Positions 395 through 64,000 of a DNA stretch of 64,000 nt are shown here, piece by piece. The notes below the pieces were generated by a model. It saw only the letters and a list, made by a program, of their open reading frames with translations. It made no database searches and was not told the origin of the DNA. The stretch is from Auanema rhodensis. Taxonomy: Eukaryota > Animalia > Nematoda. How positions within the stretch are numbered: the first letter of the stretch is position 1; every line of letters starts with the position of its first letter. The position numbers and the translations under genes are program-made. The stretch spans positions 11,408,001 through 11,472,000 of the forward strand of contig OZ059894.1 of the NCBI GenBank assembly GCA_964057225.1. Direction: 5' to 3'.

Positions 395-536
395 AATGTC
401 ATATTCTTCATTATCAGTTATATCACTCTAAATCTTGTTGTTAATAGATACGACCACAAAGAAAACAACAGGAACAGTAACAATAACAAATAAAATTTTT
501 TTTTCACCTATGTGTCTAAAGGTTAGCCATGTATCC

Positions 537-539
<3 letters not shown>

Positions 540-588
<49 letters not shown>
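540..588. repeat. (TA)n microsatellite, one per unit, about 16-34 repeats
   Basis: Seen in every unit between GTATCCGTT and CAACAGTAAAAAG; long at ~24710-24778, short at ~41860-41891. Confidence 0.97.
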
Positions 589-590
<2 letters not shown>

Positions 591-1404
591 ACAGTAAAAA
601 GTCCAATCAAGAGAGAAATTTTTTCAACACATAGTTGTTTTTTTTTTAAATATCATTGTTTTTCCTCATAACTCGGTTTAAACTCGTTCTAACCCGTTGA
701 AATACGTCTAGAAAGTCTTTATAACATGCATATGTATGATAGAACTTCATATTTATTGTAATAGAAAATTTTATTTTCAGACGTCTTGGTTAACAATGAT
801 ATGTTTTACCCCCTTATAATTTTTATCATAATGTTCCTTATACGGAACGCTCAATGAAACTTGCTTCCAGAAAAATTTCTTTCTATTTTTTCTTCATATG
901 TACGTAGATACTATAGAGAACTATGATAGAAAACTTTAACATTCACGAAATCATCATTTCTCATTACGCTACGGAGGTTTAAAAAGCTGTGTTTTACCTT
1001 ATAATAGACCGGAAAACCCTTGTGTTAAAACTGGACCGTTTTTACACATATAAAAATGTCCCGTATTCGGGACCCTAATGTAACTTTTGATTCCCTATAT
1101 TTTTTTTCATGAAATTTACAATCTACTGTAGAAAGAAGAATTATTTTTATAAAAACTGTAAATTTTTGAAAAATGAAAACAAAACGAAAACAAAAACAAC
1201 TTTTTTTTGAACATTTTCTCACACAAGGGTCCCCCCTTACCTACTTTTTTTCTCATTACTCGTTTCAACCTCATCCGATCACTCTGCAAACATGTTTAAT
1301 CGTTCTAACTTGTTGAAATACGTCTTAAAAGTCTAAACAACATGCATATGCATAATAGAAACCACCCGAATAGGCCCCCACGCACTAAACGAGATATATA
1401 CATT

Positions 1405-1720
1405 ACCAGTATAGTAATAGAACACATATTGAAGATTAATTCGATAAGAACAATTTATTGACGTAGAGAATGTTTGTTCCGAAAAACTACAATATTAAAC
1501 TATAAAAGTAACAAAAGCGTAGAGGCAGCAAAGACATGAATAAACATAAATGTAAATACAGAATTACCAGGTAGTACATAAGTATGACAAAAAATTATAA
1601 GAAAGCCATGAAAATAGAAGGTTTGTGAACAAATGAGAGGTACATCTTTGATCGTATAGTCATTTCTAAACCGTTCGTATGCTGCAGCATCGTCATAAGC
1701 GTCACTCAAGTTGAATTTCC
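1405..1720 (-). mobile_element. Degenerate relic of element B tandem junction (B 3' end + U2 nt 39-78 + B 5' start); present in 17 units
   Basis: 1416-1455 matches U2 nt 39-78 at 36/40; 1456-1499 matches 63137-63180 at 38/44; ACCAGTATAG (1405-1414) is identical to 63915-63924; patchier similarity extends to ~1720. Confidence 0.8.
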
Positions 1721-1770
1721 ATGTGTACTACACGATTTTCATTCTTATTGTTACATTCTTTCCCTGAGGG

Positions 1771-1956
1771 AATGGGCCGTTCCCGCCAGCAGTGCAAGAG
1801 CGGGTCGACCCGTGAGGTGGAGCTAGCAAGCCAGCATCTACCTCAAGTCTCAAAAATCGGTTAACCTTATTGTGAACCAATGGAACACATATCGAAGGTT
1901 AATTCGATAAGAACGATTACTACACTTTGATCTTAGCCAAAAGGCCGAGAAGCGAT
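1771..1956 (-). ncRNA. U2: U2 spliceosomal snRNA (~186 nt)
   Basis: Reverse complement ATCGCTTCTCGGCCTTTTGGCTAAGATCAAAGTGTAGTA..., stem IIa TATCGAA/TTCGATA, Sm site GATTTTTG, stem-loop IV with TTGCAC loop; 3' end approximate. Confidence 0.96.
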
Positions 1957-3069: not shown

Positions 3070-4249
3070 ACAGTAAAAAGTCCAATCAAGAGAGAAATTT
3101 TTTCAACACATAGTTGTTTTTTTTTTAAATATCATTGTTTTTCCTCATAACTCGGTTTAAACTCGTTCTAACCCGTTGAAATACGTCTAGAAAGTCTTTA
3201 TAACATGCATATGTATGATAGAACTTCATATTTATTGTAATAGAAAATTTTATTTTCAGACGTCTTGGTTAACAATGATATGTTTTACCCCCTTATAATT
3301 TTTATCATAATGTTCCTTATACGGAACGCTCAATGAAACTTGCTTCCAGAAAAATTTCTTTCTATTTTTTCTTCATATGTACGTAGATACTATAGAGAAC
3401 TATGATAGAAAACTTTAACATTCACGAAATCATCATTTCTCATTACGCTACGGAGGTTTAAAAAGCTGTGTTTTACCTTATAATAGACCGGAAAACCCTT
3501 GTGTTAAAACTGGACCGTTTTTACACATATAAAAATGTCCCGTATTCGGGACCCTAATGTAACTTTTGATTCCCTATATTTTTTTTCATGAAATTTACAA
3601 TCTACTGTAGAAAGAAGAATTATTTTTATAAAAACTGTAAATTTTTGAAAAATGAAAACAAAACGAAAACAAAAACAACTTTTTTTTGAACATTTTCTCA
3701 CACAAGGGTCCCCCCTTACCTACTTTTTTTCTCATTACTCGTTTCAACCTCATCCGATCACTCTGCAAACATGTTTAATCGTTCTAACTTGTTGAAATAC
3801 GTCTTAAAAGTCTAAACAACATGCATATGCATAATAGAAACCACCCGAATAGGCCCCCACGCACTAAACGAGATATATACATTACCAGTATAGTAATAGA
3901 ACACATATTGAAGATTAATTCGATAAGAACAATTTATTGACGTAGAGAATGTTTGTTCCGAAAAACTACAATATTAAACTATAAAAGTAACAAAAGCGTA
4001 GAGGCAGCAAAGACATGAATAAACATAAATGTAAATACAGAATTACCAGGTAGTACATAAGTATGACAAAAAATTATAAGAAAGCCATGAAAATAGAAGG
4101 TTTGTGAACAAATGAGAGGTACATCTTTGATCGTATAGTCATTTCTAAACCGTTCGTATGCTGCAGCATCGTCATAAGCGTCACTCAAGTTGAATTTCCA
4201 TGTGTACTACACGATTTTCATTCTTATTGTTACATTCTTTCCCTGAGGG

Positions 4250-16819: not shown

Positions 16820-18648
16820 ATGGTTTATTGAATAACTAATGTTATGATACAATAAATAACCAATAAAAAAGAGCCCAGAATCGGGGAGACGGTATTACCA
16901 GTACAACTTAAAACAGCAAGTAATTAAAAAGTACATAATAAGACACATTGCCAACAGAGGCTAAAACGACTCAAGAGTCGGGGGAGTGGGTTAAAAAAAA
17001 TGAACAAAAAAATGAATATTAAAGCAGAACAATGAGAAATCAAGTGCCGCTATGATCAAACAATTTGAGTGCCTACGGCAATGATGTTAAAAATAAACAA
17101 CAAAATACATGTACCAATGAAGGTCAGAAAGAAAGAAACAAAAGACAAAAATAAGTAATACAAAAAGTAAATACATTACAATCAAATCACAAACAAGTCA
17201 ATTGATAATTTCTTCTTCATATTGCCTTACACCAGAAACATGTTCCACGTAGATATTCCTGGCCCACTTGATGGTATCGGCGACGACGAGCTTCTCCATT
17301 AGCCGGTTGTAGTGGCTGCTGATCTTGAGTGATCGGAGGGCTTGTCCGTTGAGCGGGTCCATAGTTCCAAGCATTCCTACGACATATGCTTCTACACTAG
17401 TCTTATAACCAAGACATTGGTATTGGCTGGCTATGTCAGCATATTTCCTCTCCTTTATCATACGCGCGGCTATCATGGCTTGACGGCGGTTTTCATAGCT
17501 CACTGTAACATCAACGATACTACAGTGTTTTGCGTCATGATCGACCACTACTATGTCAGGTCGGAGTGTACTATTAATGCCAGGAAGAGGCTGGTTAGTG
17601 TAAACTTCTCCGTTTTTAGGCTCTGGCAGGGCTTTGATAAGACGGTCCACGATGTTGTTGTGGCGGAGTTGGATTGCTCTCGTGTGAGAGTGGCAGTGTC
17701 CAAGAACATGTGCAGCAGTTTCGTTGGAGTAACTACACCTGCGGCACTGTTTGTTTCCTTCTCCGTGTCTTCTACAGCCATTGAGCTGGAGAGTATTGAG
17801 TCGAGCCTTGTGGATGAATCGCCAATCAGCAAACCGTATGAAATCTCCCTTCGCCATAAAGTGATTGGACGCTTTGTTGAGCATTGTGACATCAAAGACT
17901 TTCCCTTGATCCGGTTTTTGAAGAAGGATCCGAAGGTCTTTCAGCCATAATGCACGTCGCAGGCTTCTGTGGCATAGTGAAGGTGTTAACAGTTGGTTGT
18001 TTAGATTGAGTTCTAAACCACTTTCGAGGCATGTCCAGTTAGCGTTGATGAGTTTCTTGAGTTGACGCATCGCTACTCTTACTCTAGTCCAGATGGAGGA
18101 AACATCAGATGTTTCGGTGTCGAAAATGCCATCAACGGAACCGTTGTAATATGCAGCTGTCTCATCGTTACTGGCTTGACGTTTAATCCTTTTTGATGCT
18201 ACTTTTTTTTGAGTCTTGATGCGCAATATCAGCTACTACAAGATCAGATGACTTCAAAAGTTGGTAGGCATGAGTGACTTCACAGACGTCTGACAGGTGT
18301 TGGAGTCGAGAGAGACCAAGTCCGCCGTAGTTAGTTGGCAGGTAGATTGGTTCAGCACTGGCGTTTGGAGGATAGTGCATCCATCTACGGGCACAGCGTT
18401 TGAGTTCTTTGTCAAAGGCGACTAGTTTACTCTTTGGGACGTGGCCATTCGTCATATGAAAATTAAGGCAGGGCATCAGGAAGGTGCGTACTGCGTCACC
18501 ATTGTGGTCTGAGTAGGATCGCGGAATAGGAGCGCAGATTGAACAAGAAAAAGGGCTCTGAAGAGGCACCTTTAGCTTGTAAAGCCCTTGCTCCATCTCT
18601 AGCAGATCTAAAGACTTACGTAGTACAGTTGCAATATCGATTTAGCCA
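16820..18648 (-). mobile_element. Utopia-like U2-targeting RLE non-LTR retrotransposon, copy 1 (1881-bp internal deletion)
   Basis: Both ends identical to full-length copies; deletion junction ...GCGTCA|CCATTG at 18498. Confidence 0.93.
17198..18596 (-). pseudogene. Deleted retrotransposon ORF: partial ZnF fused to post-RT linker, CCHC and RLE; +1 frameshift in T-run at ~18203-18210
   Basis: ORFs 18183-18596 (SDHNG|DAVRTF) and 17198-18226. Confidence 0.88.
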
Positions 18649-19546: not shown

Positions 19547-19665
19547 AGCTTACGACACCCGGGATTCCCAAGCCGTCTCCGATCCAAGTACTAACCGGGC
19601 CCAACGTTGCTTGACTTGCCAGATCGGACGGGATGGCGTACTTTCAACGTGGTATGGTCGTAAGC
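19547..19665 (-). rRNA. 5S rRNA: 5S rRNA
   Basis: Array copy. Confidence 0.96.
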
Positions 19666-19807
19666 AATGTCATATTCTTCATTATCAGTTATATCACTCT
19701 AAATCTTGTTGTTAATAGATACGACCACAAAGAAAACAACAGGAACAGTAACAATAACAAAAAAAATTTTTTTTTCACCTATGTGTCTAAAGGTTAGCCA
19801 TGTATCC

Positions 19808-19855
<48 letters not shown>

Positions 19856-20257
19856 ACAGTAAAAAGTCCAATCAAGAGAGAAATTTTTTCAACACATAGT
19901 TGTTTTTTTTTTAAATATCATTGTTTTTCCTCATAACTCGGTTTAAACTCGTTCTAACCCGTTGAAATACGTCTAGAAAGTCTTTATAACATGCATATGT
20001 ATGATAGAACTTCATATTTATTGTAATAGAAAATTTTATTTTCAGACGTCTTGGTTAACAATGATATGTTTTACCCCCTTATAATTTTTATCATAATGTT
20101 CCTTATACGGAACGCTCAATGAAACTTGCTTCCAGAAAAATTTCTTTCTATTTTTTCTTCATATGTACGTAGATACTATAGAGAACTATGATAGAAAACT
20201 TTAACATTCACGAAATCATCATTTCTCATTACGCTACGGAGGTTTAAAATCATCATC

Positions 20258-23200
20258 ATCGGGGAGACGGTATTACCAGTACAACTTAAAACAGCAAGTA
20301 ATTAAAAAGTACATAATAAGACACATTGCCAACAGAGGCTAAAACGACTCAAGAGTCGGGGGAGTGGGTTAAAAAAAATGAACAAAAAAATGAATATTAA
20401 AGCAGAACAATGAGAAATCAAGTGCCGCTATGATCAAACAATTTGAGTGCCTACGGCAATGATGTTAAAAATAAACAACAAAATACATGTACCAATGAAG
20501 GTCAGAAAGAAAGAAACAAAAGACAAAAATAAGTAATACAAAAAGTAAATACATTACAATCAAATCACAAACAAGTCAATTGATAATTTCTTCTTCATAT
20601 TGCCTTACACCAGAAACATGTTCCACGTAGATATTCCTGGCCCACTTGATGGTATCGGCGACGACGAGCTTCTCCATTAGCCGGTTGTAGTGGCTGCTGA
20701 TCTTGAGTGATCGGAGGGCTTGTCCGTTGAGCGGGTCCATAGTTCCAAGCATTCCTACGACATATGCTTCTACACTAGTCTTATAACCAAGACATTGGTA
20801 TTGGCTGGCTATGTCAGCATATTTCCTCTCCTTTATCATACGCGCGGCTATCATGGCTTGACGGCGGTTTTCATAGCTCACTGTAACATCAACGATACTA
20901 CAGTGTTTTGCGTCATGATCGACCACTACTATGTCAGGTCGGAGTGTACTATTAATGCCAGGAAGAGGCTGGTTAGTGTAAACTTCTCCGTTTTTAGGCT
21001 CTGGCAGGGCTTTGATAAGACGGTCCACGATGTTGTTGTGGCGGAGTTGGATTGCTCTCGTGTGAGAGTGGCAGTGTCCAAGAACATGTGCAGCAGTTTC
21101 GTTGGAGTAACTACACCTGCGGCACTGTTTGTTTCCTTCTCCGTGTCTTCTACAGCCATTGAGCTGGAGAGTATTGAGTCGAGCCTTGTGGATGAATCGC
21201 CAATCAGCAAACCGTATGAAATCTCCCTTCGCCATAAAGTGATTGGACGCTTTGTTGAGCATTGTGACATCAAAGACTTTCCCTTGATCCGGTTTTTGAA
21301 GAAGGATCCGAAGGTCTTTCAGCCATAATGCACGTCGCAGGCTTCTGTGGCATAGTGAAGGTGTTAACAGTTGGTTGTTTAGATTGAGTTCTAAACCACT
21401 TTCGAGGCATGTCCAGTTAGCGTTGATGAGTTTCTTGAGTTGACGCATCGCTACTCTTACTCTAGTCCAGATGGAGGAAACATCAGATGTTTCGGTGTCG
21501 AAAATGCCATCAACGGAACCGTTGTAATATGCAGCTGTCTCATCGTTACTGGCTTGACGTTTAATCCTTTTTGATGCTACTTTTTTTGAGTCTTGATGCG
21601 CAATATCAGCTACTACAAGATCAGATGACTTCAAAAGTTGGTAGGCATGAGTGACTTCACAGACGTCTGACAGGTGTTGGAGTCGAGAGAGACCAAGTCC
21701 GCCGTAGTTAGTTGGCAGGTAGATTGGTTCAGCACTGGCGTTTGGAGGATAGTGCATCCATCTACGGGCACAGCGTTTGAGTTCTTTGTCAAAGGCGACT
21801 AGTTTACTCTTTGGGACGTGGCCATTCGTCATATGAAAATTAAGGCAGGGCATCAGGAAGGTGCGTACTGCGTCAGCTTTCTGCCATTCAGCAAGTAAGG
21901 ATTTGTCAATTTTTTCCAAGTGTTGACTCATAATATTCACTGTTGGAACCGCAGACTTATGTAAATGCATTCCAGTAGGGATTCCCAGGTGGGAGTAGCT
22001 GTCGAATTTGCTGAGAGCGGGTAGAGAGGAGCTCTGTAGCATGTATGAGGCTGTTGATATTTTCCCTTTGTCGATCGTCAAGGTGGCGCATTTCGCTGGT
22101 TTGAAGGTCAAGCCTGTGAAATTAGCCGCATTTGATGCTGCGTCCAACATTTTCTGTAGATCTTCTGATGATGAGGAGACCAGGGCAAGGTCATCGGCGT
22201 ACGCTAGCACAGCGATGTTGTGGTTGTGTAGCTTATAGCCAGTAGAGGATTCCAAGATGGTTTTAATTAGAGGTTCAATGGCAAGGTTGAACAGGATCGG
22301 AGATAGTGGGGATCCTTGTAACACACCTGCATGAACTGGAATGGTCGATGTGAGTCCGGAGCCTGTCTGGATTCTTGTAGAGGCATCTGTGTATAGAGCT
22401 CGTACTCGGGATATTGAGGCTTCAGCCACTCCTGACCATCTTAGAACGTCTAGCAGAGTTTCGTGTGGCAGCGATCCAAAAGCGTTTGCGAGATCAAGCC
22501 AAGCAATTGCAATTTTCTCACGTTTACGTTTAGCGTCCGCAATGGTACTTTGCAACATAAAGTTGTGTTCCATGCATCCAGCTTTGGCCACAAAGCCCTT
22601 TTGGGAGGGAGAAAGTCTTTTTTCTGCTCTTGCCCATGTTAGCAGTCGATGCGTAAGACAAGCTGAGTACGTCTTACCAATTGTGCACGAAAGTGCTATT
22701 GGTCGCCAGTTGTTAATGTCAGCTTTATCACCTTTCTTATGGATGAGGACGGTGGTCGACTCTTTCCAGGAAAAAGGGATGTGTCCTAGCTTGTGTACGG
22801 TGTTAAATATCGCTGCTAATATGTGACCTCCTTGGTCAAATTTCTTCCAGTGCGAGTATCGAAGTCCATCAGCTCCTGGAGCCGTATCGCTGCAACGTCG
22901 TATGCGTTCCCAGACTTCCAAAGGGGTGAAAACACCTTCTAATGGGTCGGTACTAGCTGGCAAATCCGGTCTGGTGACTGTGATGGGGAGGGCTGGGCCT
23001 TGACTGCTGTGAACAGAAAGGAAATGTTTTTCAACCTCTGCAGATGGTATGGTGCAGGTTTCACTTTGTTCTCCGAGCAGTTGTCGAAAGGCTTTCTTCT
23101 TGTTGGCCCTCCAGAGCTTCTGGAGCTTCATCGCCTGGGTTTTTTGGTCTTCCTCAGGTTGTGTGTGTGGTCGGCGCCTTTGTCGGAAGTTGGGAACTTT

Positions 23201-23907
23201 GATCATAATGTCAAGAGACTTTCTGATTGCGTCTACCAACTCTTCCAGGACCTGCTCGAGCTCACTTTTGCACACAACCTTTTTAATTCTATCCACCCAA
23301 GTATTTTCAGAGTTTCTATTCGGATCAGGGTCGGCAAAAAATGGTTCTGTACTCGAAACCCTGATCTCGTTGAATATTTCACTCTCTCGCGGAAGGGGGG
23401 AAACTTCGGCCTCTGGGGACAAGTCCAGAATTGGGGCCTCAAACAAGCGTACCGTTGATGGAGATCCTTGTTCCTGTCCACTGGATGATGTTTCCTCCAT
23501 TGTACGCTCCTCCACGGGCGGGGTGGTCGTCCTTGTGCCTGGTGGCCGGGTGTTCCTGATCCTCCGCAATATAGGGCGGGAACTGGGCTCTCTCGGAGAT
23601 AGAGGTGAGATCACCACAGTTTCCTCTATGATGCGGAGGCATCCTTCAGCTTTTTTTCTGATGGCTTTTAACGGCCTTCAGATTGCTGGTGAGGCCACAG
23701 GCACGGCACTCAAATTCTACTCCGACCTCATGTTCTCTCCGAAGATGGCGGACGAGACCATTGTGGTCTGAGTAGGATCGCGGAATAGGAGCGCAGATTG
23801 AACAAGAAAAAGGGCTCTGAAGAGGCACCTTTAGCTTGTAAAGCCCTTGCTCCATCTCTAGCAGATCTAAAGACTTACGTAGTACAGTTGCAATATCGAT
23901 TTAGCCA
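20258..23907 (-). mobile_element. Utopia-like retrotransposon, copy 2 (last 60 bp lost with flanking U2 3' part and spacer)
   Basis: Spacer ...GGTTTAAAA joined via TCATCATC to ATCGGGGAGAC inside the 3' UTR. Confidence 0.93.
20576..23855 (-). pseudogene. ZnF-RT-RLE polyprotein with +1 frameshift in T-run at ~23651-23657
   Basis: ORFs 23646-23855 and 20576-23617; run is 7 T versus 6 T in intact copies (may be a homopolymer error). Confidence 0.85.
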
Positions 23908-24003
23908 TTAACCTTATTGTGAACCAATGGAACACATATCGAAGGTTAATTCGATAAGAACGATTACTACACTTTGATCTTAGCCAAAAGGCCGAGAAGC
24001 GAT
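23908..24003 (-). pseudogene. U2: U2 snRNA nt 1-96 fused to element 5' end
   Basis: Same junction as 18649. Confidence 0.93.
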
Positions 24004-24445
24004 ACAGCATAGCCATGAGTATCAAAGACATCAAGCAAATGTATCGTACTTGTTACGAGTGCACTCTCTCATTTGAATATAAAAGTGTGGTTTGACAATC
24101 TTGACTGTACAGGTCATAAATGGCTCATATAAACTGTGGATTTACTCAACTTTTGGACTTATTTTTTTCTTATTCGAAGCGCTGCACTTTTTTCTATTCT
24201 TTTTATTCAAATACTTGTATATAGTTTTATATGTACGGTTGCAAAGTTTCCGAATATTTTATATATTTTTATACAATAATTAGGAGAAGGTTAATACAAT
24301 GAAATCTCCCAACTTTACAGTGTTTGTATTGCTTACAGTATCTAGAACAACCACTCTTGTAATATTAGAGCACATATCAATCAACAACTTTTTCTAGTTA
24401 TCAAAGCTTTTTTATTTCTTCAAGATATTTCAAATAAAATATAAA

Positions 24446-24564
24446 AGCTTACGACACCCGGGATTCCCAAGCCGTCTCCGATCCAAGTACTAACCGGGCC
24501 CAACGTTGCTTGACTTGCCAGATCGGACGGGATGGCGTACTTTCAACGTGGTATGGTCGTAAGC
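24446..24564 (-). rRNA. 5S rRNA: 5S rRNA (only copy in this unit)
   Basis: First-copy left flank joined to second-copy right flank. Confidence 0.96.
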
Positions 24565-24706
24565 AATGTCATATTCTTCATTATCAGTTATATCACTCTA
24601 AATCTTGTTGTTAATAGATACGACCACAAAGAAAACAACAGGAACAGTAACAATAACAAAAAAAATTTTTTTTTCACCTATGTGTCTAAAGGTTAGCCAT
24701 GTATCC

Positions 24707-34781: not shown

Positions 34782-34877
34782 TTAACCTTATTGTGAACCA
34801 ATGGAACACATATCGAAGGTTAATTCGATAAGAACGATTACTACACTTTGATCTTAGCCAAAAGGCCGAGAAGCGAT
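34782..34877 (-). pseudogene. U2: U2 snRNA nt 1-96 fused to element 5' end
   Basis: Same junction as 18649. Confidence 0.93.
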
Positions 34878-35324
34878 ACAGCATAGCCATGAGTATCAAA
34901 GACATCAAGCAAATGTATCGTACTTGTTACGAGTGCACTCTCTCATTTGAATATAAAAGTGTGGTTTGACAATCTTGACTGTACAGGTCATAAATGGCTC
35001 ATATAAACTGTGGATTTACTCAACTTTTGGACTTATTTTTTTCTTATTCGAAGCGCTGCACTTTTTTCTATTCTTTTTATTCAAATACTTGTATATAGTT
35101 TTATATGTACGGTTGCAAAGTTTCCGAATATTTTATATATTTTTATACAATAATTAGGAGAAGGTTAATACAATGAAATCTCCCAACTTTACAGTGTTTG
35201 TATTGCTTACAGTATCTAGAACAACCACTCTTGTAATATTAGAGCAAACATTCGATTAACAACAACTTTTTTTTAGTTATCAAAGCTTTTTTATTTCTTC
35301 AAAAAATTTCAAATAAAATATAAA

Positions 35325-35443
35325 AGCTTACGACACCCGGGATTCCCAAGCCGTCTCCGATCCAAGTACTAACCGGGCCCAACGTTGCTTGACTTGCCAG
35401 ATCGGACGGGATGGCGTACTTTCAACGTGGTATGGTCGTAAGC
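35325..35443 (-). rRNA. 5S rRNA: 5S rRNA (only copy in this unit)
   Basis: Flank switches from first-copy to second-copy type at TATTAGAGCA (~35237-35246). Confidence 0.96.
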
Positions 35444-35585
35444 AATGTCATATTCTTCATTATCAGTTATATCACTCTAAATCTTGTTGTTAATAGATAC
35501 GACCACAAAGAAAACAACAGGAACAGTAACAATAACAAAAAAAATTTTTTTTTCACCTATGTGTCTAAAGGTTAGCCATGTATCC

Positions 35586-59369: not shown

Positions 59370-62300
59370 ATGGTTTATTGAATAACTAATGTTATGATAC
59401 AATAAATAACCAATAAAAAAGAGCCCAGAATCGGGGAGACGGTATTACCAGTACAACTTAAAACAGCAAGTAATTAAAAAGTACATAATAAGACACATTG
59501 CCAACAGAGGCTAAAACGACTCAAGAGTCGGGGGAGTGGGTTAAAAAAAATGAACAAAAAAATGAATATTAAAGCAGAACAATGAGAAATCAAGTGCCGC
59601 TATGATCAAACAATTTGAGTGCCTACGGCAATGATGTTAAAAATAAACAACAAAATACATGTACCAATGAAGGTCAGAAAGAAAGAAACAAAAGACAAAA
59701 ATAAGTAATACAAAAAGTAAATACATTACAATCAAATCACAAACAAGTCAATTGATAATTTCTTCTTCATATTGCCTTACACCAGAAACATGTTCCACGT
59801 AGATATTCCTGGCCCACTTGATGGTATCGGCGACGACGAGCTTCTCCATTAGCCGGTTGTAGTGGCTGCTGATCTTGAGTGATCGGAGGGCTTGTCCGTT
59901 GAGCGGGTCCATAGTTCCAAGCATTCCTACGACATATGCTTCTACACTAGTCTTATAACCAAGACATTGGTATTGGCTGGCTATGTCAGCATATTTCCTC
60001 TCCTTTATCATACGCGCGGCTATCATGGCTTGACGGCGGTTTTCATAGCTCACTGTAACATCAACGATACTACAGTGTTTTGCGTCATGATCGACCACTA
60101 CTATGTCAGGTCGGAGTGTACTATTAATGCCAGGAAGAGGCTGGTTAGTGTAAACTTCTCCGTTTTTAGGCTCTGGCAGGGCTTTGATAAGACGGTCCAC
60201 GATGTTGTTGTGGCGGAGTTGGATTGCTCTCGTGTGAGAGTGGCAGTGTCCAAGAACATGTGCAGCAGTTTCGTTGGAGTAACTACACCTGCGGCACTGT
60301 TTGTTTCCTTCTCCGTGTCTTCTACAGCCATTGAGCTGGAGAGTATTGAGTCGAGCCTTGTGGATGAATCGCCAATCAGCAAACCGTATGAAATCTCCCT
60401 TCGCCATAAAGTGATTGGACGCTTTGTTGAGCATTGTGACATCAAAGACTTTCCCTTGATCCGGTTTTTGAAGAAGGATCCGAAGGTCTTTCAGCCATAA
60501 TGCACGTCGCAGGCTTCTGTGGCATAGTGAAGGTGTTAACAGTTGGTTGTTTAGATTGAGTTCTAAACCACTTTCGAGGCATGTCCAGTTAGCGTTGATG
60601 AGTTTCTTGAGTTGACGCATCGCTACTCTTACTCTAGTCCAGATGGAGGAAACATCAGATGTTTCGGTGTCGAAAATGCCATCAACGGAACCGTTGTAAT
60701 ATGCAGCTGTCTCATCGTTACTGGCTTGACGTTTAATCCTTTTTGATGCTACTTTTTTTGAGTCTTGATGCGCAATATCAGCTACTACAAGATCAGATGA
60801 CTTCAAAAGTTGGTAGGCATGAGTGACTTCACAGACGTCTGACAGGTGTTGGAGTCGAGAGAGACCAAGTCCGCCGTAGTTAGTTGGCAGGTAGATTGGT
60901 TCAGCACTGGCGTTTGGAGGATAGTGCATCCATCTACGGGCACAGCGTTTGAGTTCTTTGTCAAAGGCGACTAGTTTACTCTTTGGGACGTGGCCATTCG
61001 TCATATGAAAATTAAGGCAGGGCATCAGGAAGGTGCGTACTGCGTCAGCTTTCTGCCATTCAGCAAGTAAGGATTTGTCAATTTTTTCCAAGTGTTGACT
61101 CATAATATTCACTGTTGGAACCGCAGACTTATGTAAATGCATTCCAGTAGGGATTCCCAGGTGGGAGTAGCTGTCGAATTTGCTGAGAGCGGGTAGAGAG
61201 GAGCTCTGTAGCATGTATGAGGCTGTTGATATTTTCCCTTTGTCGATCGTCAAGGTGGCGCATTTCGCTGGTTTGAAGGTCAAGCCTGTGAAATTAGCCG
61301 CATTTGATGCTGCGTCCAACATTTTCTGTAGATCTTCTGATGATGAGGAGACCAGGGCAAGGTCATCGGCGTACGCTAGCACAGCGATGTTGTGGTTGTG
61401 TAGCTTATAGCCAGTAGAGGATTCCAAGATGGTTTTAATTAGAGGTTCAATGGCAAGGTTGAACAGGATCGGAGATAGTGGGGATCCTTGTAACACACCT
61501 GCATGAACTGGAATGGTCGATGTGAGTCCGGAGCCTGTCTGGATTCTTGTAGAGGCATCTGTGTATAGAGCTCGTACTCGGGATATTGAGGCTTCAGCCA
61601 CTCCTGACCATCTTAGAACGTCTAGCAGAGTTTCGTGTGGCAGCGATCCAAAAGCGTTTGCGAGATCAAGCCAAGCAATTGCAATTTTCTCACGTTTACG
61701 TTTAGCGTCCGCAATGGTACTTTGCAACATAAAGTTGTGTTCCATGCATCCAGCTTTGGCCACAAAGCCCTTTTGGGAGGGAGAAAGTCTTTTTTCTGCT
61801 CTTGCCCATGTTAGCAGTCGATGCGTAAGACAAGCTGAGTACGTCTTACCAATTGTGCACGAAAGTGCTATTGGTCGCCAGTTGTTAATGTCAGCTTTAT
61901 CACCTTTCTTATGGATGAGGACGGTGGTCGACTCTTTCCAGGAAAAAGGGATGTGTCCTAGCTTGTGTACGGTGTTAAATATCGCTGCTAATATGTGACC
62001 TCCTTGGTCAAATTTCTTCCAGTGCGAGTATCGAAGTCCATCAGCTCCTGGAGCCGTATCGCTGCAACGTCGTATGCGTTCCCAGACTTCCAAAGGGGTG
62101 AAAACACCTTCTAATGGGTCGGTACTAGCTGGCAAATCCGGTCTGGTGACTGTGATGGGGAGGGCTGGGCCTTGACTGCTGTGAACAGAAAGGAAATGTT
62201 TTTCAACCTCTGCAGATGGTATGGTGCAGGTTTCACTTTGTTCTCCGAGCAGTTGTCGAAAGGCTTTCTTCTTGTTGGCCCTCCAGAGCTTCTGGAGCTT

Positions 62301-63078
62301 CATCGCCTGGGTTTTTTGGTCTTCCTCAGGTTGTGTGTGTGGTCGGCGCCTTTGTCGGAAGTTGGGAACTTTGATCATAATGTCAAGAGACTTTCTGATT
62401 GCGTCTACCAACTCTTCCAGGACCTGCTCGAGCTCACTTTTGCACACAACCTTTTTAATTCTATCCACCCAAGTATTTTCAGAGTTTCTATTCGGATCAG
62501 GGTCGGCAAAAAATGGTTCTGTACTCGAAACCCTGATCTCGTTGAATATTTCACTCTCTCGCGGAAGGGGGGAAACTTCGGCCTCTGGGGACAAGTCCAG
62601 AATTGGGGCCTCAAACAAGCGTACCGTTGATGGAGATCCTTGTTCCTGTCCACTGGATGATGTTTCCTCCATTGTACGCTCCTCCACGGGCGGGGTGGTC
62701 GTCCTTGTGCCTGGTGGCCGGGTGTTCCTGATCCTCCGCAATATAGGGCGGGAACTGGGCTCTCTCGGAGATAGAGGTGAGATCACCACAGTTTCCTCTA
62801 TGATGCGGAGGCATCCTTCAGCTTTTTTCTGATGGCTTTTAACGGCCTTCAGATTGCTGGTGAGGCCACAGGCACGGCACTCAAATTCTACTCCGACCTC
62901 ATGTTCTCTCCGAAGATGGCGGACGAGACCATTGTGGTCTGAGTAGGATCGCGGAATAGGAGCGCAGATTGAACAAGAAAAAGGGCTCTGAAGAGGCACC
63001 TTTAGCTTGTAAAGCCCTTGCTCCATCTCTAGCAGATCTAAAGACTTACGTAGTACAGTTGCAATATCGATTTAGCCA
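59370..63078 (-). mobile_element. Utopia-like retrotransposon, copy 6 (full length, 3709 bp)
   Basis: 52-nt unique 5' UTR, intact ORF, 378-nt 3' UTR ending AATAAACCAT; no poly(A) tail or LTRs. Confidence 0.95.
59748..63026 (-). CDS. Non-LTR retrotransposon polyprotein, 1092 aa (2 ZnF, RT, CCHC, RLE)
   Basis: Same motifs as 37367-40645 (YADD, CRRC..H..C, RHN, RPD, KERKY). Confidence 0.96.
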   Translation of the reverse strand: MEQGLYKLKVPLQSPFSCSICAPIPRSYSDHNGLVRHLRREHEVGVEFECRACGLTSNLKAVKSHQKKAEGCLRIIEETVVISPLSPREPSSRPILRRIRNTRPPGTRTTTPPVEERTMEETSSSGQEQGSPSTVRLFEAPILDLSPEAEVSPLPRESEIFNEIRVSSTEPFFADPDPNRNSENTWVDRIKKVVCKSELEQVLEELVDAIRKSLDIMIKVPNFRQRRRPHTQPEEDQKTQAMKLQKLWRANKKKAFRQLLGEQSETCTIPSAEVEKHFLSVHSSQGPALPITVTRPDLPASTDPLEGVFTPLEVWERIRRCSDTAPGADGLRYSHWKKFDQGGHILAAIFNTVHKLGHIPFSWKESTTVLIHKKGDKADINNWRPIALSCTIGKTYSACLTHRLLTWARAEKRLSPSQKGFVAKAGCMEHNFMLQSTIADAKRKREKIAIAWLDLANAFGSLPHETLLDVLRWSGVAEASISRVRALYTDASTRIQTGSGLTSTIPVHAGVLQGSPLSPILFNLAIEPLIKTILESSTGYKLHNHNIAVLAYADDLALVSSSSEDLQKMLDAASNAANFTGLTFKPAKCATLTIDKGKISTASYMLQSSSLPALSKFDSYSHLGIPTGMHLHKSAVPTVNIMSQHLEKIDKSLLAEWQKADAVRTFLMPCLNFHMTNGHVPKSKLVAFDKELKRCARRWMHYPPNASAEPIYLPTNYGGLGLSRLQHLSDVCEVTHAYQLLKSSDLVVADIAHQDSKKVASKRIKRQASNDETAAYYNGSVDGIFDTETSDVSSIWTRVRVAMRQLKKLINANWTCLESGLELNLNNQLLTPSLCHRSLRRALWLKDLRILLQKPDQGKVFDVTMLNKASNHFMAKGDFIRFADWRFIHKARLNTLQLNGCRRHGEGNKQCRRCSYSNETAAHVLGHCHSHTRAIQLRHNNIVDRLIKALPEPKNGEVYTNQPLPGINSTLRPDIVVVDHDAKHCSIVDVTVSYENRRQAMIAARMIKERKYADIASQYQCLGYKTSVEAYVVGMLGTMDPLNGQALRSLKISSHYNRLMEKLVVADTIKWARNIYVEHVSGVRQYEEEIIN

Positions 63079-63136
63079 TTAACCTTATTGTGAACCAATG
63101 GAACACATATCGAAGGTTAATTCGATAAGAACGATT
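63079..63136 (-). pseudogene. U2: U2 snRNA nt 39-96 fragment between element B and Utopia copy 6
   Basis: Exact U2 match TTAACCTTATTG...GAACGATT. Confidence 0.92.
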
Positions 63137-63924
63137 TATTGAAGTAGATAATGTTTGTCCCGGAGGACTACAATATTAAAATAATTACTGAAGCCCGAAG
63201 GCAGCGAGAAATAGTAAGGATACTACCTGCACTGAGTGCGTCGTATCATAAAAAAAGAGATAGCTAATGGGCAAGTTGAAGAGCTTGAAATTAACAATGA
63301 CGTCACTAGAAGTAAAGTTTTCTATCTGCAGCTGCGGGTAAAGAGGGTCAGCGTAAGCAGAATTCAATTCTACCAACAATTAGTGGGAACATTGAGAGAA
63401 CAGATGAAGGAGGAAATTGTAACTTCAAGTAAAATAGATTATATCTTCAGCTGCGGGTAAAGAGAGTCAGCTTTGTACAGATTACTAGTTTACATAAGAA
63501 GTGGTAACATTTCAAAAAAGGAGCACAACATAAAAAACGAGACTACGGACTATGAGGTAAATGTTATCATTGTCTGGATCGATGATTCGGCATTTGATTG
63601 CAGCTGCGGATTGAGTGGATCAGCTTGCATGGCGTCCGCATTCGACATCAGGGAAAATGATGAGTTTCTTGAGGTCCGGCTCGGCGGGCTGTTATGTCCT
63701 ATTCCCTGTTGATGGTGTTGTTGTCCTTGAGCTTGTTCTTCTTCCCAGAAAAAAAAAAACTGTGAAGCTGAAGAGTCCTATTAAACGTCTTTAAACGCAA
63801 GATTAATAAGAAGCTACTACAGCTAACACAGGACCGCCTCAAGGCCTGGTAGATCAACCAGTGTTGCTTCAATCACCAAGTATTGCGGCCTGGGCCCTTG
63901 GATCAATTCACAACACCAGTATAG
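63137..63924 (-). mobile_element. Element B: 788-bp U2-targeted, probably non-autonomous retroelement
   Basis: Inserted at the same U2 site; flanked by duplicated U2 nt 39-79; ends TCAATAA; no RT or endonuclease ORF. Confidence 0.8.
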
Positions 63925-64000
63925 CAATGGAACACATATCGAAGGTTAATTCGATAAGAACGATTACTACACTTTGATCTTAGCCAAAAGGCCGAGAAGC
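63925..64000 (-). pseudogene. U2: U2 snRNA nt 4-79 fused to element B 5' end (cut by window edge)
   Basis: CAATGGAACACATATC...GCCGAGAAGC matches U2. Confidence 0.92.

Follow-up and report, generated by a model that had tools for sequence, protein, structure and literature searches.

The locus examined here raises the question of how a short segment of noncoding spacer, lying downstream of an intact U2 snRNA gene, came to hold the 3' end of one mobile element, a fragment of U2 and the first nucleotides of another such element, all joined without a gap. The window, by which we mean the whole stretch of 64,000 nucleotides that was analyzed, is a tandem 5S-5S-U2 array in which Rfam places all of the 5S rRNA and U2 snRNA genes on the minus strand. 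Self-BLAST resolves a repeat unit of ~2.48 kb that is composed of 5S, 5S and U2 genes followed by a 1372-nt spacer, with individual units being 99-100% identical. Six U2 genes in the window are interrupted, five of them by a 3.7-kb element termed A and one by an internally deleted 1.83-kb derivative of A. Units that follow two of the A-bearing U2 genes contain a single 5S gene in place of two (23908-24653 and 34782-35532). Our analysis indicates that positions 1405-1548 of this array, referred to below as the scar, are a dead head-to-tail junction of two elements of a second family, termed B, that was most likely formed by double insertion and then trimmed, decayed and spread over the array. 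We place the probability of this reading at roughly 0.8.

The two types of element are seen together at the right end of the window, where the U2 sequence upstream of an A copy is interrupted by B, giving the order U2(1-79), B, U2(39-96), A, U2(38-190). The features of this living stack are the following:

59370-63078, minus strand: element A, a retrotransposon of Utopia type as judged from flanks and content, flanked by U2(1-96) and U2(38-190)
59748-63026: the ORF of element A, 1092 aa, with a reverse transcriptase domain (Pfam RVT_1, E 3e-28)
63079-63136, minus strand: U2 nt 39-96 between B and A, which joins the 3' end of B to the 5' end of A as a stacked junction of living elements
63137-63924, minus strand: element B, a living, non-coding copy of 788 nt, flanked by U2(1-79) and U2(39-96)
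63925-64000, minus strand: the U2 sequence that precedes B, from nt 79 down to nt 4, where it is cut by the end of the window

Element A has the traits of a Utopia element, namely a 3' flank that begins at about U2 nt 39 and a single ORF with N-terminal zinc fingers, a reverse transcriptase, and a C-terminal zinc finger and nuclease. Motifs recognized by pattern only are two N-terminal zinc-finger-like motifs, a CCHC motif at residue 911 and an RPD...D nuclease motif near residue 973. The junction between A and U2(38-190) is found in all A copies that have an intact 3' end. Because this U2 3' flank agrees with the published downstream U2 flank of Utopia, which starts at nt 39 (Kojima and Jurka 2015, PMC4640811), A is by its flanks, domain and motif content assigned to the Utopia type. 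The closest proteins are 38-56% identical and are either unnamed or labelled R2-like. The interrupting copy at 16820-18648 is an internally deleted A and not a 5'-truncated one, as it retains the U2 leader, ~150 nt of the A 5' end and the 3' 1.7 kb, with ~1.88 kb of the ORF missing. In this it resembles the internally deleted non-autonomous derivatives of R2.

Element B has no significant similarity to A except for a short TTCAATA motif near both 3' ends, and the best reading of B is that it constitutes a short non-coding passenger of the Utopia-type element A. Within B, ~120 nt are duplicated in tandem (nt 453-544 against nt 572-660, score 66.5), and a GCTGA..CCGCAGCTG motif is present in three copies. 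The fraction of B sequence words recovered is 0.63-1.00 in DNA sequencing runs with organism labels A, B, D and F and 0.39-0.77 in probable RNA runs. The latter suggests that B is transcribed, with the RNA nature of these runs being a guess and their contigs showing neither strand nor ends. There is no living B-B dimer in the 64-kb window.

Set against these living elements, the relevant parts of the repeat unit are the following:

395-1766, minus strand: the U2-to-5S spacer, as used in the alignments
1405-1414, minus strand: B nt 1-10 (CTATACTGGT), an exact match that follows U2 nt 79 without a gap, just as in living B
1415-1455, minus strand: fragment of U2 snRNA, nt 39-79, 36/41 identical, being the same U2 segment that is duplicated around living B
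1456-1548, minus strand: fossil 3' end of a B-family element, aligning to B nt 703-788 (the last 86 nt)
1767-1956, minus strand: the intact U2 snRNA gene of the unit (Rfam U2, 148.4 bits)

The three pieces of the scar thus follow one another in the order of 3' end, target segment and 5' end, and their boundaries are identical to those of the living B copy, where U2(1-79) precedes the element and U2 resumes at nt 39. Both terminal modules of the B family are present. The final 44 nt of B match at 38/44 positions, preceded by a part that is ~60% identical with indels, and the 5' start matches at 10/10. Across both strands of the whole window CTATACTGGT occurs 18 times, 17 of which are in scars and one at the true 5' end of B (63915-63924). 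The U2 piece differs from the gene at five positions, all of them G:C to A:T transitions (C to T or G to A), and is also recovered as a weak Rfam U2 match at 1409-1452 (model positions 41-84). These values agree with the original prediction, which had given 38/44 for the B end against 63137-63180 and had the spacer sequence end in the first 10 nt of B; its count of 36/40 with four transitions for U2 nt 39-78 becomes 36/41 once nt 79 and a fifth transition are added.

Local alignment of the spacer with B scores 75.5, as compared to 30.7 +/- 3.4 (maximum 43) for dinucleotide shuffles, which places it 13 SD over the shuffles. When the spacer is aligned to a virtual junction composed of B, U2(39-79) and B, a single unbroken block is obtained (score 159.5) that spans B nt 703-788, U2 nt 39-79 and B nt 1-10. 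BLASTN likewise pairs the scar with both living B ends together with their U2 flanks, over 84 nt at 88% identity (E 4e-24) and over 51 nt at 90% identity (E 4e-14).

The homology does not extend further. Upstream of the 86-nt match, local and anchored alignments to B gave scores that were reached by 21 of 200, 98 of 1000 and 155-472 of 500 shuffles, and the strongest additional block, of spacer 161-210 with B 404-449, has a p of ~0.1. A significant alignment of spacer to B therefore stands for the 86-nt B end, and the weaker similarity that had been claimed for ~200 bp more does not, as alignments upstream are no better than shuffles. Since this upstream similarity is within the shuffle range, the feature comprises 1405-1548 (144 nt) and not 1405-1720, with 1549-1720 excluded. 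Alignments of the sequence following the 10-mer to the 5' region of B or to the 5' region of A are also within the shuffle range. No homology to the body of B is detectable in the scar beyond the 86 nt, which may reflect deletion or a different subfamily, and the junction is not flanked by two recognizable elements, just 86 nt of one and 10 nt of the other being left. Identity to B falls from 86% over the last 44 nt to ~60% just upstream and is gone beyond ~90 nt, a drop that exceeds what uniform decay of a direct B ancestor would give. With body homology undetectable as well, it may be that the scar donors, as far as the terminal sequences tell, belonged to a sister family that had only the ends in common with B. 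Additionally, no remnant of U2 nt 1-38, of U2 nt 80-190, of duplicated U2 flanks or of a second U2 gene is found around the scar, so that erosion of a second U2 gene in place is hypothetical.

Two other similarities in this region were considered and set aside. The 3' UTR of A (A nt 3320-3476; 59604-59760) aligns weakly to spacer nt 151-324 (1443-1616) with a score of 50 against 32.8 +/- 4.9 for shuffles, a value reached in 2 of 300 shuffles. This match is borderline and T-rich, with no U2 fragment in A, and was treated as an effect of composition, which it probably is. A sequence repeated in direct orientation close to the two scar ends, TACTA..CTGGTAAT, was examined as a footprint of ectopic insertion or capture and is at chance level (94 of 300 shuffles).

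The scar is present in 17 of the 18 units, and these 17 copies are 100% identical over 156 nt. In the 18th unit, at ~20250, it has been lost in a deletion of ~1 kb that starts in the 3' region of an A copy and ends within the spacer; the relic had been said to be present in 17 units and to be missing solely where deleted at this position, and this is what is found. The deletion, which lies in 19547-23960, joins the 3' region of A to spacer position ~709 of the unit and has taken the last ~60 nt of A, U2(38-190) and ~660 nt of spacer including the scar. Invariance of the scar is not special, as the whole spacer is highly uniform: a comparison of 15 of the 17 spacers, which leaves out two with a differing U2 3' end, shows ~4 sites of substitution and a single microsatellite that varies. 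The scar is nevertheless ~12-14% diverged from its sources, and since the 17 copies are identical despite this divergence, it predates the last homogenization or amplification of the array. A fraction of 0.78-0.90 of the spacer words is recovered from DNA runs of five organism labels (A-E), and contigs of three labels span the scar without differences. The scar is thus real and does not result from assembly.

This structure most likely arose by double insertion. Living elements would integrate at the U2 38/39 nick by target-primed reverse transcription, and their upstream flank keeps U2 up to a family-specific point (nt 79 in B, nt 96 in A). A gene occupied by B consequently reads U2(1-79), B, U2(39-190), with an intact target persisting in its upstream U2 part. 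Insertion of a second B into that upstream part would give the 3' end of the new B, U2(39-79) and the 5' end of the resident B, such that the younger, upstream element would supply the 3' end of the junction and the older, downstream element would supply the 5' end. Deletions would then have trimmed the upstream element to 86 nt and the downstream one to 10 nt. What was left decayed toward A/T, and the unit that carried it would have taken over the 5S-5S-U2 array by unequal exchange or amplification. The living stack of B on A shows that the upstream U2 part has been re-used in this array. Moreover, A and B share the nick and differ in their 5' junction (96 vs 79), which fits a model in which upstream U2 sequence would travel on the element RNA and the cDNA would anneal to the upstream target; a staggered top-strand cut in place of an RNA-borne leader would give the same DNA structure. 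The proposal that the present unit descends from a locus with stacked B insertions, with concerted evolution having spread the scar, is supported by the order and boundaries of the pieces, the living stack and the identical copies. So is the claim that leader length and target site have remained fixed over ~10-15% divergence, given that the nick at 38/39 and the junction at nt 79 are unchanged at ~12-14%.

Other origins can be envisioned that differ in the direction of descent or in the number of insertions. If the spacer were ancestral host DNA from which B took its ends, then similarity would be limited to the termini of B, as is observed; this is nevertheless the least probable of the explanations that we considered. 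Only the conserved gene can be the source of the U2 piece, which has decayed from it G:C to A:T, and the B-like part of the scar has the same bias, with 17 changes to A/T and 5 in the opposite direction relative to B. The spacer copy is consequently a decaying derivative, which argues against capture by B. The circularly permuted order, in which U2 nt 39-79 is bounded at both of the positions made by B integration, argues against it as well, as capture does not predict such an arrangement. In addition, two UNCG-loop hairpins near the 3' end of B fold with a z of ~-2 and the fossil version with a z of ~0, so that stable hairpins kept in B have been lost in the spacer copy. Changes in the terminal hairpin of the fossil (C-G to U-A, C-G to U-G and loop UCCG to UUCG) were considered as compensatory change under selection. 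All of them belong to the dominant class of mutation and the fold is no longer predicted, and there is thus no evidence of selection; we infer that the scar is non-functional. The U2 fragment contains the host-specific AATCG variant, decayed to AATTG. Host U2 reads GTAATCG at 1913-1919, right at the element nick site, where U2 of most animals has GTATCTG. As the fossil carries this host variant too, the variant is older than the fossil.

A more serious competitor, though still an unlikely one, obtains the same junction without a second insertion. A lone B has a 41-bp copy of U2(39-79) on either side, and unequal exchange between these repeats would give a B-U2(39-79)-B dimer. Recombination between them could instead pop out a circle of B plus one repeat, a piece of which would later have been captured in the spacer. 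Both routes yield the exact order and boundaries that are observed, frequent unequal exchange is evident in the array, and a small captured fragment would account for there being no U2 flanks or element bodies around the scar. Circularization and unequal exchange have also been named as routes to tandem elements by McGurk and Barbash (PMC5932611). However, repeats of 41 bp offer little length for homologous exchange, the stack of B on A is a direct instance of re-insertion into an upstream U2 part, and the TACTA repeat as a possible mark of capture is no better than chance. The position of the scar, which starts 218 nt downstream of the 3' end of the intact U2 gene, may be due either to a second U2 gene eroded in place or to capture of a small fragment, and there is an outside chance that U2 and its tail are one retro-copied unit. 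In that last case the intact U2 and 311 nt downstream of it would be a U2-headed element with a B-type 3' tail that was inserted upstream of a resident B, the whole U2 gene would be its leader, and the 218 nt between U2 and the fossil would be its body and not host spacer. Such a unit would explain the intact U2 just upstream without extra deletions, and Phytophthora copies of Utopia are preceded by intact U2 genes instead of U2(1-38) (PMC4640811). A run that is guessed to be RNA also provides a 330-nt contig containing the last 35 nt of U2 and spacer nt 1-295 (1472-1766), with almost nothing from the spacer beyond nt 295. This suggests that U2 read-through transcription extends into the fossil, but the RNA nature of the run is just a guess and contigs show neither strand nor transcript ends. 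Furthermore, canonical U2 targets in the window hold no other copy of such a unit, the stretch of 218 nt is without similarity to B, and the fossil tail no longer folds like that of B. We therefore consider a retro-copied unit to be highly improbable and give the same slight credence to its broader form, in which U2 genes of the array with their 311-nt tails would be U2-headed retro-elements and Utopia machinery would have helped seed or spread the host U2 copies. Were it true, read-through U2 transcripts may once have served the Utopia machinery as templates.

Under the preferred reading of double insertion, the scar has close counterparts among known systems. Utopia-1_NVit occurs in tandem in U2 genes, and 20 of 94 Utopia 3' junctions in N. 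vitripennis are followed by Utopia (PMC4640811). The elements described here have in common with Utopia-1_NVit the U2 target gene and the 3' boundary at U2 nt 39. In contrast, Utopia-1_NVit is living and autonomous and arthropod Utopia makes no target duplication (PMC4640811), while the present case involves a 41-nt duplication or leader (59 nt for A), an old fossil and non-autonomous elements. In Drosophila melanogaster, tandem R1 elements have 33 nt of 28S rDNA between them and are attributed to double insertion (Roiha et al. 1981, as related in McGurk and Barbash 2018, PMC5932611). As far as that account describes them, R1 tandems resemble the scar in being site-specific non-LTR elements arranged head-to-tail, with a piece of target in the junction, an origin from two insertions and spread by unequal exchange. 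They differ in that R1 elements are largely intact and form an array of their own, whereas the scar consists of 86 and 10 nt of non-coding passengers that are carried passively in the 5S-U2 unit. R2 offers a third parallel, as its RNA is described as typically retaining ~28 nt of upstream 28S target and its cDNA as able to anneal upstream (Eickbush et al. 2013, as cited in PMC13580325). On that description, target sequence borne on RNA would explain why each family has a fixed 5' junction (79 for B, 96 for A) and how the target is rebuilt upstream, although B and A are known here from DNA junctions, for which a staggered top-strand cut would account as well.

Given that tandem junctions of Utopia and R1 with target sequence between the elements are already published, the scar represents a case of a known type and not a new system, and none of its implications require a new mechanism. 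What is new is an old and eroded junction of non-autonomous passengers that has been fixed passively in a host 5S-U2 array, demonstrating that homogenization alone can fix a piece of parasite junction throughout a host multigene array. The scar also serves as a dated internal outgroup for the B family and for the functional ends of B, which is of modest value. It indicates that the nick site at U2 38/39 and the junction at nt 79 were already in use ~12% of neutral divergence ago, and that the last 44 and first 10 nt of B have hardly changed while the sequence just inside them has. These conserved ends are probably the parts that are read by the reverse transcriptase, and rebuilding of the target and stacking appear to have a long history among these U2 parasites.

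Runs under five other organism labels contain spacer or B sequence that is nearly unchanged and thus too close for use as an outgroup, two pattern scans of metagenomes for an outgroup scar returned nothing, and contigs that encode the closest Utopia-like proteins (55-56% identity) do not reach a U2 flank. Finally, run X10 contains a low-depth variant of spacer 702-959 with 20 substitutions and 1 indel in 258 nt, which hints at a second, diverged variant of the array.
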